DNA from: Azolla caroliniana
Lineage: Eukaryota > Plantae > Polypodiophyta
Direction of reading: 5' to 3'
NCBI GenBank assembly: GCA_043228905.1
Contig: JBHGNT010000009.1
Span: 2,170,001-2,234,000, forward strand
DNA: 64,000 nt
The position numbers and the translations under genes are program-made. Positions 27,916-40,301 of this stretch are shown piece after piece. The notes below the pieces were generated by a model that had not been told where the DNA came from, made no database searches, and worked only from the letters and a program-made list of their open reading frames with translations. Each line of letters begins with the position of its first letter. Position 1 is the stretch's first letter.

Positions 27916-28596
27916 ATGTAATCTCTTATTGGAAAAACAATAATAATGAATAGATGCAATTAAGACAATCTTCTAATAGTATGCTTAGATAACATAAAGA
28001 AATTGCATATCCAAAGTCTAACAAAGCTTGCTCGAAAATATGTTACAGAAGGTACATGGACAATCAAGGGTATTTGAGACACCCTCTACTTCACAAAGAA
28101 GATTTTTCGATGAGGTAGACCGAGATATCATTCATGACTTTGTCTAGACACGTATTATTTTGTGATGCTATGCAATCGTTGACACTCTAGATATGTTACT
28201 TTACTTTACTAAGGTCGTTGATTTTAAACACATATGATATATCACATATTGCCTATATACATCACTTGATTCCTCTTTGTCTTCCTCTCCTCTATTACTT
28301 TTTTTTATGAGATGAAGTACCACAAGATCCATGCCAGATGGATAGATGAGCAATTGCAGGATTGTGATAAGGTAAGCATCACATTGCTCTATTAATAACA
28401 CTAATGTCTAGTGAGCATAAATACTCGATGTGGGAATAGGCAATTCAAGGTCGAGAGCAATGGCAATGAGAAGATCAAACTGTTTTTTGTGAAGTGTGAG
28501 TGAAGCAAGAGGTATACATTTTCTTTTTATCCCATATTCAAATGCAAGTTAAACCTTGGGCTATAAAGAAGAAAATATTATCCCTTGCAAGAGTGT

Positions 28597-28684
28597 ACTA
28601 TTCTTTCGCCTTTTCCTACCTCAAACACCTTAATCCTAATTTTTTGAATTGGGGAAGCTTGGATTGTCATTAAATTGAGCTTCA
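28597..28684 (+). pseudogene. U5: U5 snRNA pseudogene A (5'-truncated, internally deleted, long-hairpin class)
   Basis: ACTATTCTTTCGCCTTTT is joined directly to CCTACCTCAAAC. Sm site AATTTTTTG and a GGGGAAGCT...GAGCTTC hairpin follow. USE-like ATCCCATATTC at 28529, TATA at 28562. Confidence 0.75.
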
Positions 28685-29165
28685 CATTAGCAAATCTCAA
28701 GCACAACAAAATGGCAAACTGGCCATCTTGTATTATGACTTATAAAGCATCATGATGCAAGAGATTTGAAGATTTTTGTTATGATCGTGATGAAAGAGGT
28801 TAAATGATTTTTGTTATGATTATGTTGAAAGAGGTTTAATGAAAATTGATTAAATGTATTCGATCTTGCTCACTTTGTGCCTTGTTGTACACGAGATGAT
28901 TGAAATGAGGTATAAAATGAACAAGAGGATTGGTCACATGCTCTCGGATGTCAAAGTTTCATCCTTGATGTAAAAAGACAATAGTTAACACGAATAGGAA
29001 ATCAAGGAAAGTGGCATGACGTGGCGATTACAAAAAGGGAAATTGTTGTTTATCCATGAATGAGTTGTAGATATAGTTCTCTCACGTTAGTTTATTCCAT
29101 ATGCAAGCAACAATAGGAAAATGTAGATGGTCTAAAAATACAAATAATAGTTACCCATGAATTTC

Positions 29166-29293
29166 ATTAGGATGGTGTGGCTTAAGCACAACAACCTTTT
29201 ATTGAAGAATAGCGGGTACTAATCCTTCCAATGATCTAACCCTAAGATTCAAATGGTGAAAGTTGTTCCTCGTTTCTAAGATGCAACTTCCCA
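29166..29293 (+). pseudogene. U5: Highly degenerate U5 snRNA pseudogene B
   Basis: ATTAGGATGGTGTGGCTTAAGCACA...CCTTTTATTGAAGAATA...CTAACCCTAA...GAAAGTTG...CAACTTCCC is colinear with the intact copies. USE-like ATTCCATATGC at 29094. Confidence 0.65.
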
Positions 29294-29726
29294 CTATATA
29301 AAGGCTACTACCACATTTAATTGGTACCCTAGACTTGTGAGGTTATAACTTGGTTGAGCCATTTGAAAACATGAACATGTATTGACATGATGATGAGCCT
29401 TTGCACTAGGTACCTAGGATATAACAAGAAAAAAGTTCCTCAATGGACATGTTTGACGAAACAACACTTTTGAACCTCAATGGACATGTTTGGATCATGT
29501 TGGGATTAGTTGTCGTGGACCATTGCAACCCACGAGATGGGTAAGGTAGATTTTCTATTTGATCACTTGTACCTTAAGATTTGTAGCCCATATATATGTA
29601 TATAAAGATGAAGGTGATATAGCCAAGTTTGTGTGTGGACTGGACGGGTTTCAGATATCGGAATGTGGAAATGAATCTAAAAAAAGGCTATTATGAGAAA
29701 AGGAAAGGAGTCATTTCTTTTGGTTT

Positions 29727-29767
29727 ATCCCACATACAAGGGATTAAAGACCCGTGGGATATAAATA
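29727..29767 (+). promoter_or_regulatory. snRNA promoter (USE + TATA) of U5 copy C
   Basis: ATCCCACATAC at 29727-29737 (plant USE consensus RTCCCACATCG), 22-nt spacer, TATAAATA at 29760. Confidence 0.85.
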
Positions 29768-29792
29768 GGAGATATCAAATTCATCTCAAACC

Positions 29793-36833: not shown

Positions 36834-38168
36834 ACATTACAAATACAAGAAACACAAAATGTATTTCTATTTGTAATTGCTCTTGTATTGATGCTTCTTT
36901 AATTCTTATTTTGGGTTGATTTCCAAACAATTGAGCTCTTATTATGCTAGAATGTAGAATTAACAAGCCTTTCGGGGACCCCCAATGATCATGTGTGCAT
37001 GTCTTGAGGGTGTAGAATAAACCGGCATTTTTGAGATAACAAGGGATAATGTGTCTTTACATCTATTTTTAAACCAAAAATAAAGACACATCAAGATCAA
37101 TATGTATCTATCTTTTCGAGAGCACAAAGGATTTAAATTTTGCATATTTTATTTGTTAAGAACACAACATATTAATATTTGTGCTAATGTAGATCCCTCT
37201 AGTAATGCAACATTTGTTGTAGAAAAGAACGATGTAATATATGTGGTGTATTATGTATATCACAAAAAACTAGGAAAAACGGTATGCATGGAAGTGTTTC
37301 TTTAGGTACATATATACATAATATCAAATGATTCTAACTATGAATTTGTTGATGAGGGTATAATGTATTTGAAGATGCTTGAGAATAATTGTATTCGAGA
37401 TATAGGATATGAATAATCATTAGGGATATAATACTTGTCAAAATGCAAGCTTGATAGGAAGAGAGATGAGGGTGAGTTATCATTCAAGAGGAAGAAGTTA
37501 ATCAAAAGGGGGAGAAAAAACACAATTTATTTTGGGTTTCTCATATGTTATGGTATCCAAGTTGTATGGTCTCAAAGAACACATGATGTTTTTATCTTTG
37601 CTCTTTAAATTTTGAACACATATTTTTGTGATGATTTAGAACATCAATTTTAGTCTTCAACAAGTTGGAAAAGATTGTGAATGCCATGAAAGTGAGTCTA
37701 AAGGATTTCTTTCTTCAATCAACTTAATATTGTGTAGCTAGGTGTGGTTTCGAGGTCAATGTTTTCTTCTTAAATGGAATATCTTAGTATATTCATTTTT
37801 CATATGCGAATGAACACAAGGTTAATAAATATTGACGGCGTGAATTTGATCGGTGCATTCACTCCCTTTATTTGTTAAGGATGATGCAAATGCAGAATAA
37901 GCAGGCATTCCTTCCAACACACACTATAAATTTACAAGAAGATTGGTTACTTCAATAAACGATATTGTGCTCTATGATGTTCATCGGGCAAAGCTTGAAA
38001 AACCAAAGAGCAATCTTGAACAAGAAAACAGTAGGGAATAAGAGGGAGTGACATGAGTTAGGCATGGCACGACATTCATTGGTGATGTGAAGAAGAAATG
38101 GGCAACTATCTTTGCTCATGAACCATGAGGTCTCTCTCTCTCACACACACACAAGTTTGTTGATTCAT

Positions 38169-38208
38169 ATCCCACATACAAAAGCAAATTGTTGCTGCTC
38201 TATAAAAA
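38169..38208 (+). promoter_or_regulatory. snRNA promoter (USE + TATA) of U5 copy G
   Basis: ATCCCACATAC at 38169-38179, 21-nt spacer, TATAAAAA at 38201 (about -31). Confidence 0.85.
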
Positions 38209-38231
38209 TCACATCAGTCGCAGTGAGCTTC

Positions 38232-38360
38232 ATCGGGATGGTGTGGGTTGAGCATAGAGGAAACTATTCTTTCGCCTTTTACTAAAGAATACCATGTGCT
38301 CCTCCTACCTCAAACGCCCTAACCCTAATTTTTTGGAGGGGAATCTCTCGCGAGGTTCCA
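38232..38360 (+). ncRNA. U5: U5 snRNA copy G (short 3' hairpin)
   Basis: Intact loop 1 GCCTTTTAC, Sm site AATTTTTTGG, hairpin GGAATCTC-TCGC-GAGGTTCC. Confidence 0.92.
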
Positions 38361-38973
38361 CATACAAATCAACAACAAAAGATTGAATTATATACATAGT
38401 TAAGTATGTACTTCTTTAAGTATGTACTTCATTTTAGCAAATCAATTTATCGCCATTTAGTTTCTGCTTGTTATATATTAACCATGAAAGAAATCCGATT
38501 ACCCAATTTCTCGCCATTATCCGATACATGAGAACCCAATCCATCATATAATCATATCGGCCTAGCACCAAAAAAGAAACCAAGACCGAGCATTTAGATG
38601 TTCTCCTTTAGAATTTTTACAAAGCCCTTTGTAACACACACTCATCAACAAACTAATAAATGCATACTTTTCAAGTGATTAACACAAACTTTCTTCGCTT
38701 TATTAGAGGATTTGAAGGTGGGACGCTCTATTTGAAGTCAAGACATTAATTATGCAACATATGATGATAGAAAATGTGCAAACCTTATAAATGTAGAATT
38801 AACTTTCCTGGGTTTACTAGAGGATTTGTAGGGTGTCAAGGTCTCTTATTTGGTGACAGATTTCAATAATGCTTTAATATGATGCTTGCAAAACAGTAGA
38901 GACTCACAATACAAATTTTCAACCAACAAGATGAATTTCTTGGCTTTTATTATGAGCATTACCATTTGGAAGG

Positions 38974-39116
38974 AGGGAAGCTCAATCTGACAATAGAAAG
39001 AGTTTCCTTGTTCAAAAAATTAGGGTTAGGGCGTTTGAGGTAGGAGGAGCACACGATATTCTTTAGTAAAAGGCGAAAGAATAGTTCGCATTGTGCTCAA
39101 CCCAAGCCATCCCAAT
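38974..39116 (-). ncRNA. U5: U5 snRNA copy H (long 3' hairpin)
   Basis: Reverse complement has an intact loop 1, Sm site AATTTTTTG and hairpin GGAAACTC...GAGCTTCC. USE ATCCCACGTGC at 39176-39186, 23 nt from TATAAATA. Confidence 0.88.
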
Positions 39117-40301
39117 GACGAAAGGTAAGTGAACGAATTAGTTATATTTATAAGCCAAGAGTTCCAGTGTATTGTGCACGTGGGATACATACACGATAAT
39201 AGTGCGGCCATTTAGTTAGTATTCACACCCTAAGAATGTTCATAGTTCAATGCCAACGTCTGTTTTGATAAGAACGATTCAAGGGTAGGTTCACCAACCA
39301 TCTCCATGTTCATTTGTTTTTAGAGTTTACGATTTACGGTTTATGTATCAATAAATCACAACACCCATCCATCCATCTTCGAATCCTTTGTCCTGTGTAC
39401 GGATCAAGTGAGGAAAGAATAGAGATATTGCGTCAGCAATGTAGCACACGCAATAACGAAGAATTGCCTTCCAATTATACATAGAACGTTACACATACAC
39501 ACACGCAATCCATTTTAGTAAGGGTAGTGTTGTCCTCTTGAGTGATGCCATCATCCTTCAACGTTTAGGATTTGCTGCTAACAAATATGCTATTCATCAT
39601 CTCACTTACTTCGTGCAAATATTCCAAGGGGCTTGGTGCGTTCACGTCTTCTTGAAAGTGTATGTTGTTTCTAATAACATTTTGATGATATGGGTTGCAT
39701 GCGTGTGAATCTAATGATAACTTCTGAATGCCACCTCTATCACATTCAAACACGATAAACAATGTTCAAATCATACCCAATATAACGATTAAATTTATTG
39801 GCGATGGTATATAAATGATGCATTATAAGGGCTCTATTTTCTCCGTTAGTTTAGCTACTTCATCTTTAATGGCTAAAGGAATCACATGCAGATTGATTTC
39901 CATGACTTGCATAGGGATTATGTTCATGTTATCATTGATGAAGTATGGTTGTATGCATCGTGTTATCAACAAATACACACATGTTTATGGATTGTAGAAC
40001 CCACTAGGAGTAAAGGGGTGCCATCATACAACTTTTTTGTCATACCAAAGACAAAAAAACAACAAATATGTTTTTGTATTACAACTTCACGATGTGAGAG
40101 AGTTGCTTCCTTACCAAGGACAACTGGACCAAGGTGGGAATTGGGTTGGGGTAGGTGGGGCCTAACAAAGAGAATGCCCCCTTGGGCTCCTCAAGGTTGA
40201 AAACTTGAACCATGATGATACAATGTCAACCCTACCAAAAGAATAAGTCTTCAGATTTTCACACTCTACACATGCACACACACACACACACACACACACA
40301 C

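Follow-up and report, generated by a model that had tools for sequence, protein, structure and literature searches.

How can a small nuclear RNA (snRNA) gene be read by RNA polymerase II (Pol II) if its two promoter elements stand about as close together as those of a gene for RNA polymerase III (Pol III)? The question is raised by a cluster of U5 snRNA genes in a stretch of 64,000 nucleotides (nt) of Azolla caroliniana DNA (contig JBHGNT010000009.1, positions 2,170,001 to 2,234,000; this whole stretch is called the window below). For vascular plants, the rule of Waibel and Filipowicz (1990), by which the distance from the USE (upstream sequence element) to the TATA box decides between Pol II and Pol III, is still cited (PMC8287931, PMC9845283), and recent reviews restate it as three versus four helical turns (PMC9845283; PMC12133305). 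Spacers in A. thaliana are 32-34 nt in Pol II genes and 23-24 nt in Pol III genes (PMC8287931); this paper gives the rule for vascular plants, tracheophytes being absent from its own snRNA promoter survey. The intact U5 genes of the window have spacers of 21-23 nt. The reading that we prefer, and consider probable, is that the cluster consists of ordinary snRNA genes, four intact and four decayed, which Pol II would transcribe from a plant snRNA promoter in a compact form specific to the lineage. The textbook spacing rule thus probably fails to hold across all land plants.

The identity of the genes was established with the Rfam U5 model RF00020, which matched the window five times over its full length (model positions 1-117) with 56-84 bits, against a gathering score of 40. 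A blastn search with one U5 gene and its flanks added three further decayed copies, near 28590-28690, 29195-29245 and 36738-36793, which were confirmed on reading. In total, eight copies occupy the 10.7-kb cluster, some in each orientation and with Copia fragments interspersed:

Copy A, 28529..28690, plus strand: U5 pseudogene with a degenerate USE and a body with an internal deletion.
Copy B, 29095..29250, plus strand: strongly decayed U5 pseudogene, its USE and TATA box degenerate too.
Gene C, 29793..29920, plus strand: U5 snRNA of about 128 nt, running from the A of ATCGGG through the short terminal hairpin; Rfam match 29799-29915, 84 bits, the top score.
Gene D with its promoter, 31550..31739, plus strand: USE 31550-31560, TATA box 31578-31585, RNA from 31612; Rfam match 31618-31734, 56 bits.
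Gene E, 35708..35850, minus strand: U5 snRNA of about 143 nt, whose long terminal hairpin has a 9-bp stem and an 18-nt loop; Rfam match 35727-35844, 78 bits.
Copy F, 36640..36810, plus strand: decayed U5 pseudogene, found by blastn and reading.
Gene G, 38232..38359, plus strand: U5 snRNA, from Rfam and alignment; Rfam match 38238-38358, 68 bits.
Gene H, 38976..39116, minus strand: U5 snRNA of the long-hairpin type, whose terminal stem has two A-C mismatches; Rfam match 38992-39110, 73 bits.

Four of the eight copies (C, E, G and H) look intact and four decayed. In the four intact ones, loop 1 has its invariant sequence, CGCCUUUUACUAAAG, and the Sm site, which resembles AAUUUUUGG, is followed by the 3' hairpin. 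In gene D both are altered, loop 1 to CGCCCUUUACUAAUG and the Sm site to ACUUUUUUGG, and for this reason gene D is probably a pseudogene. In gene G, stem I reads GCAT...ATGC instead of the GCAC...GTGC of the other copies, both strands having changed. Two U5 variants coexist in the cluster, one of about 128 nt (C, D and G) with a terminal hairpin of 8-bp stem and 4-nt loop, and one of about 141-143 nt (E and H) with a 9-bp stem and a loop of 16-18 nt; pseudogene A is of the long-hairpin type. When the five full-length copies were aligned, conservation was found to reach 7 nt further upstream than the Rfam match, beginning at ATCGGGATGGCG. In the consensus fold of the window-type genes, the GGG of this leader pairs with a CCC just 5' of the Sm site in 13 of 13 genes, which indicates that the leader belongs to the RNA and that the A of ATYGGG is likely its 5' end. 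Judged by sequence and predicted fold, the window genes are ordinary U5 spliceosomal snRNA genes.

How, then, are their promoters built? As spacer we took the nucleotides between the 11-nt USE and the first T of the TATA box, and positions were counted from the A of ATYGGG:

Pseudogene A, plus strand: USE ATCCCATATTC at 28529-28539, spacer 22 nt, TATA box TATAAAGA at 28562-28569.
Gene C, plus strand: USE ATCCCACATAC at 29727..29737, spacer 22 nt, TATA box TATAAATA at 29760..29767, starting at -33.
Gene D, plus strand: USE ATCCCACATGC, spacer 17 nt, TATA box TATAAAAA.
Gene E, 35877..35916, minus strand: USE ATCCCACATGC at 35916-35906, spacer 21 nt, TATA box TATAAAAA at 35884-35877.
Gene G, 38169..38208, plus strand: USE ATCCCACATAC at 38169-38179, spacer 21 nt, TATA box TATAAAAA at 38201-38208.
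Gene H, 39145..39186, minus strand: USE ATCCCACGTGC at 39186-39176, spacer 23 nt, TATA box TATAAATA at 39152-39145.

The USE, ATCCCACRTRC, agrees with the plant consensus RTCCCACATCG at 8-9 of 11 positions, and its core TCCCACAT is intact in four of five copies. It starts at -62 to -70 (about -66 to -56 for the element as a whole), and a conserved AAAGG-type extension adjoins it on the 3' side; for the TATA box, TATAAAWA, the start lies at -31 to -36, typically about -33. A second, more distal USE was considered and ruled out, no conservation being seen upstream of the TCCCACAT motif across the window lineage. With spacers of 21, 21, 22 and 23 nt in the intact genes and 17 nt in gene D, where 4 nt are missing relative to the closest paralogue, the promoters lie outside the 32-36 nt (about four helical turns) of angiosperm Pol II snRNA genes, and overlap the 23-26 nt of angiosperm Pol III type-3 genes at the lower edge only. 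A first-pass annotation of this DNA had reported 22 nt for C, 21 for E, 21 for G, 23 for H and 22 for A, and our measurements reproduce all five values. The USE and TATA positions that it gave, about -63 to -70 and -31 to -36, are likewise matched, and its bounds for the cluster, 28529-39186, coincide with the outermost positions of the first and the last USE. It spoke of five full-length copies, and Rfam does count five; the fifth spacer that it quoted, however, belongs to pseudogene A, and the full-length copy D, with its 17 nt, went unquoted.

Agreement among five copies in one window says little by itself, since the copies are paralogues. A metagenome collection was therefore scanned with a pattern for U5 loop 1 in its plant form, closing stem included; this pattern differs from human U5 at two positions, and none of the contigs was taken as human. 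All hits with enough upstream sequence were measured by one scoring rule, and those were kept in which a USE could be recognised and a TATA box stood at the proper distance from the gene. The U5 counts given here and below are those among the matches listed. Together with the window, at least 94 U5 genes were measured, and they fell into three non-overlapping spacer classes:

Window-type, leader GGGATGGCGTGGGTT: 12 genes (4 in the window, 8 on contigs) from 8 sources, spacer 21-23 nt.
Moss-type: 11 genes on ten contigs, spacer 26-27 nt.
Other plant-type: 71 genes on about 60 contigs, spacer 31-36 nt (mode 32), one at 28.

The same measuring rule that gives 21-23 nt in the window thus returns 31-36 nt in 70 of the 71 other plant-type genes, a class in agreement with the 32-34 nt published for angiosperm Pol II genes; where we call it seed-plant-type, the label refers to this match in spacing alone. 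One gene, on contig L095 (21 nt), was counted as window-type after the automatic sorting had placed its mutated leader in the other plant-type class.

The window-type contigs come from seven European Nucleotide Archive (ENA) assemblies of one accession series (ERZ10343xx-44xx). They align to the window over the gene and part of the promoter only, and their remaining flanks do not align. Two pairs among them are 90-92% identical to each other, which indicates that several diverged genomes or loci are represented. In the same series, the 1.9-kb contig L121 of ERZ1034435 encodes a residue-for-residue copy of a lipid transfer protein (LTP)-like protein of the window. This fits an origin of the window-type U5 contigs from relatives of the window species, and the sequenced study evidently sampled the window plant or close relatives, plus microbes.

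Could the cluster nevertheless be a silent pseudogene array, with the expressed U5 genes elsewhere and canonically spaced at about 33 nt? The first-pass annotation had named this as one of two cases that would overturn its reading. Half of the eight window copies are visibly decayed, and Copia fragments lie within the cluster. On the other hand, no window-lineage U5 gene with about 33 nt was seen among the matches listed: all 12 genes with the window leader, the eight on contigs coming from seven assemblies, have 21-23 nt. Moreover, the four intact copies keep loop 1, Sm site, stems, USE and TATA box, and the decayed copies lose all of these together; the decayed gene D is the one that is short of 4 spacer nt. 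We therefore regard a silent array as unlikely.

Two of the relatives' contigs carry a second snRNA gene, each 1.1 kb from the U5 gene:

U4 snRNA gene, L068:1915-2070, minus strand: Rfam 112 bits.
U4 snRNA gene, L095:2187-2342, minus strand: Rfam 96 bits.

Both U4 promoters have the USE GTCCCACATAG, a spacer of 22 nt and the TATA box AATAAATA or GATAAATA, and both carry an AAAGGCA extension 3' of the USE, as in U5. Across the U5 and U4 genes, the first 10 nt of the spacer after the USE show 60% identity (consensus AAAGGCAARG), as against only 35% for the last 11 nt before the TATA box. The USE of the window lineage thus seems to reach further 3' than the angiosperm 11-mer. A spacer that keeps its length while its sequence drifts carries the signature of a constraint on spacing. 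Since 21-23 nt recurs in eight U5 and two U4 genes with non-aligning flanks, the short spacing goes beyond chance among paralogues, and by this comparison it is a trait of the lineage.

The angiosperm rule, taken at face value, would predict that U5 in the window lineage is transcribed by Pol III, and 21-23 nt is indeed near, slightly under, the angiosperm Pol III range of 23-26 nt. The RNA itself speaks for Pol II. A run of four T (T4) lies at +47 in the four intact genes, and T5-6 at +99 in all five full copies; these internal runs, which the first-pass annotation had placed in loop 1 and at the Sm site, would stop Pol III before the 3' hairpin. Past the terminal hairpin, the first run of T4 or longer is 29-83 nt away or absent, so that the terminator directly after the gene, which had been reported missing, is missing indeed. 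A Pol III type-3 gene has no internal T4 or longer run and has a T-run directly after the gene; the window U5 genes show the reverse on both points. An Sm site implies a 7-methylguanosine (m7G) cap, cap-dependent export and trimethylguanosine (TMG) capping, as established for the biogenesis of small nuclear ribonucleoproteins, and the standard Sm site of these genes is in this respect an argument for Pol II. The U4 genes of the relatives, with the same spacing, are a further point against Pol III.

The 3' flanks argue in the same direction. Of 36 seed-plant-type genes, 13 contain the canonical plant 3' box, CAN3-10AGTNNAA, where 1.3 would be expected. Among the window-type genes, 11 of 13 instead show an (A/T/C)AAAT(G) block that begins 6-8 nt beyond the terminal stem, with CACAGTAAATG, CATCATAAAATG and CACATACAAATC among its forms; in gene C this candidate 3' box is:

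3' flank block of gene C, 29921..29936, plus strand: ACATACAAAAAAAACC, with the (A/T/C)AAAT-type motif of the lineage.

A conserved block at a fixed distance from the gene is what is seen at Pol II snRNA genes and favours this polymerase; moss-type U5 genes carry a block of their own, AAAYTGGA. Transcription of these U5 genes by Pol III is accordingly a very remote prospect.

Compared with angiosperm Pol II snRNA promoters (Arabidopsis U2 and U5; USE RTCCCACATCG, TATA box at about -30), those of the window lineage have the same elements in the same order, the same core TCCCACAT, the same distance from TATA box to start and the same gene product, and the conserved 3' block sits where the 3' box would. 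They differ in the spacer, 21-23 instead of 32-34 nt and thus one helical turn shorter; in the last two positions of the USE, RC instead of CG, followed by the conserved AAAGG; and in the AAAT-type block that takes the place of the canonical 3' box consensus. The likeness to angiosperm Pol III type-3 promoters (U6 and U3; three turns, T-run terminator) is confined to a spacing of the same order, 21-23 against 23-26 nt, the window spacers being 1-3 nt shorter; the internal T4 and T5-6, the Sm site and the lack of a terminator set the window U5 genes apart.

If Pol II reads a promoter of this length, what distinguishes it from a Pol III promoter of the same lineage? The fern comparator available is U6 of Ceratopteris richardii. 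In three of its U6 promoters we counted 25 nt between ACCCACAT(GT/AT) and TACATA (PMC11638000 Supp. Fig. S1B), and a preprint gives the elements as USE AAACCCACATGTG and TATA box TACATAT (10.1101/2025.01.12.632625). Counted in the same way, Arabidopsis U6 in the PMC11638000 figure has 26 nt to TATATA or 24 to TTTATATA, so that our convention lies within 0-2 nt of the published 23-24. The Ceratopteris U6 promoter, a Pol III promoter from the same broad lineage, has the two-element layout of the window genes with 25 instead of 21-23 nt; its USE, AAACCCACATGTG, lacks the AAAGG extension, and its TATA box is TACATAT and not TATAAAWW. In Physcomitrium and Ceratodon, U6 promoters have a 25-bp gap (10.1101/2023.10.25.562971). 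The difference between Pol II and Pol III spacers, about 9-10 nt in angiosperms, would on these values come to about 2-4 nt in ferns, where the Pol II spacer is the shorter one, and to 1-2 nt in mosses. The one-turn difference between the polymerases thus looks absent in the window lineage.

The moss values derive from peat and moss metagenomes, in which the USE reads GTCCCATATCG or GTCCCATAGTC. The contigs are L010, L025, L033, L061, L072, L083 and L085 (Sphagnum-type), L038 and L058, and L108. One of them, L085 (spacer 27), encodes a GT37 xyloglucan fucosyltransferase with 82% identity to a named Sphagnum magellanicum protein and 92% to an unnamed cluster, and by this protein it is Sphagnum; the remaining contigs with 26-27 nt are called moss by the likeness of their U5 to that of L085. 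A spacer of 26-27 nt is half a turn off both the fern and the seed-plant values, and 1-2 nt from the published moss U6 value of 25 bp. Ten-base-pair deletions made in Arabidopsis by Waibel and Filipowicz in 1990 reportedly switch the polymerase. We also considered a helical-phase rule, in which 22 and 32.5 nt would place the elements on the same face of the DNA. It was rejected as a general rule, given that the moss-type spacers are half a turn off and that the Arabidopsis deletions reportedly have this effect.

One might still argue that the one-turn rule holds in a shifted form, the Pol III genes of the window genome having about 12 nt or using another element, so that the Ceratopteris value would not be transferable. 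No Pol III snRNA gene of the window genome or its close relatives was present among the loci searched: the plant U6 5' pattern gave no plant U6 in 120 loci (two hits, both of non-plant type) and none in the genome-contig or viral-contig collections, and Rfam on the fern-type and moss-type loci returned U5 and U4 only. The window and Ceratopteris are, besides, not closely related. The best named matches of the window GH17 protein are Adiantum nelumboides (58%), Ceratopteris richardii (57%) and A. capillus-veneris (56%), with at most 53% to angiosperms, 50% to Ginkgo and 49% to Picea and a lycophyte. By these protein matches, which agree with the source of the DNA, the window organism is a fern, yet one not close to the Pteridaceae, to which the protein is only about 57% identical. 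Against a shifted rule stand the Ceratopteris U6 promoters with their 25 nt, and we think it improbable.

Transcription by Pol II from a short promoter is consequently the reading that we keep. Several points weigh against it. The canonical 3' box is not enriched in the window-type genes (1 of 13, against 0.7 expected), and the 3' flank motifs were defined after inspecting the data and are candidate 3' boxes only. The window-type contigs carry no taxonomic label of their own, the Pol III comparator is a published figure from another fern family (Ceratopteris), and the assignment to Pol II is read from sequence features.

In the mechanism that we propose, Pol II would read a USE-TATA promoter of 21-23 nt as the standard of the window lineage. 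The RNA would start at the A of ATCGGG, with the TATA box starting at about -33, and the conserved AAAT-type block would serve as a 3' box for end formation. With 25 nt in a fern U6 promoter, a one-turn difference cannot be what separates Pol II from Pol III genes in this lineage, and another feature would have to make the choice. Candidate determinants are the USE sequence with its AAAGG 3' extension, the TATA variant (TATAAAWW vs TACATAT), or the offset of 2-4 bp. The nearest precedent in kind may be the insect element PSEA. In Drosophila, a few positions of the 21-bp PSEA, and not the spacing, decide the polymerase (PMC1761439). By analogy, the fern element may extend over some 16-21 bp (TCCCACATRC-AAAGGCAARG), with spacing alone being non-discriminating; the two have no sequence relationship, and fern Pol II genes keep a TATA box where insect Pol II snRNA genes use PSEB.

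The first-pass annotation had left an alternative: either the lineage reads the short spacing with Pol II, the angiosperm rule being derived, or U5 is transcribed in an unusual way. The first branch is now the better supported, through the conservation in U5 and U4 across diverged relatives, the Pol II-type features of the RNA, the 31-36 nt of seed-plant-type and 26-27 nt of moss-type U5 genes under one measuring rule, and the 25 nt of fern U6. For its second half, a derived state in seed plants, the basis is one moss lineage as outgroup together with U6 values from the literature; with this one outgroup, either the long seed-plant or the short fern and moss spacing may be the derived one. We would give an even chance to the wider proposal that the four-/three-turn rule is a seed-plant innovation. 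Under it, Pol II and Pol III spacers in ferns, perhaps also in mosses, would differ by 1-4 bp, and the choice would lie in other features, such as the USE variant with its 3' extension (TCCCACATRC-AAAGG vs AAACCCACATGTG) or the TATA variant, as is the case in insects. No paper stating a short Pol II snRNA spacing in seed-free plants, the second case that would have overturned the first-pass reading, was found in full-text searches; older subscription papers lay outside this search, and a prior description is possible.

The spacing rule is also applied when the polymerase of newly found non-coding RNAs, telomerase RNA and U6-like microRNA (miRNA) loci among them, is to be predicted, and when promoters for single-guide RNAs (sgRNAs) are picked. 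If Pol II snRNA genes of ferns and mosses indeed have 21-27 nt, polymerase predictions based on spacing would be unsafe outside seed plants, and a fern USE/TATA promoter picked on spacing alone could be a Pol II promoter. The way in which SNAPc, TBP and TFIIB/BRF discriminate between the polymerases would then have to differ among plant lineages, and ferns would offer a natural system for finding the other determinant.

Two further USE/TATA pairs were examined and set aside. One, at 28390-28436 on the minus strand, with core TTCCCACATCG, 28 nt and TATTAATA, faces away from pseudogene A and is probably due to chance; downstream of it there is neither an Rfam match nor a terminator nor an obvious structured RNA. 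The other, on L095 at 286 (minus strand; spacer 26 nt), was taken as chance as well, with no recognisable RNA gene or terminator downstream.

The proteins encoded elsewhere in the window are of land-plant type, among them a leucine-rich repeat (LRR) receptor kinase, the GH17 glucanase, the LTP and a plastid-type L12:

4918-6168, plus strand: GH17 glucanase gene.
22268-25705, plus strand: LRR receptor kinase gene, with one intron near its 3' end.
32966-34492, minus strand: Copia integrase and reverse transcriptase fragments, inside the U5 cluster.
47535-48323, plus strand: gene for a plastid-type ribosomal protein L7/L12.
51111-51674, minus strand: LTP-like protein of 187 aa.

Several weak, sub-threshold matches to unrelated families of animal miRNAs (mir-297, mir-3149 and mir-466) are stacked at 40957-41196 of the window.

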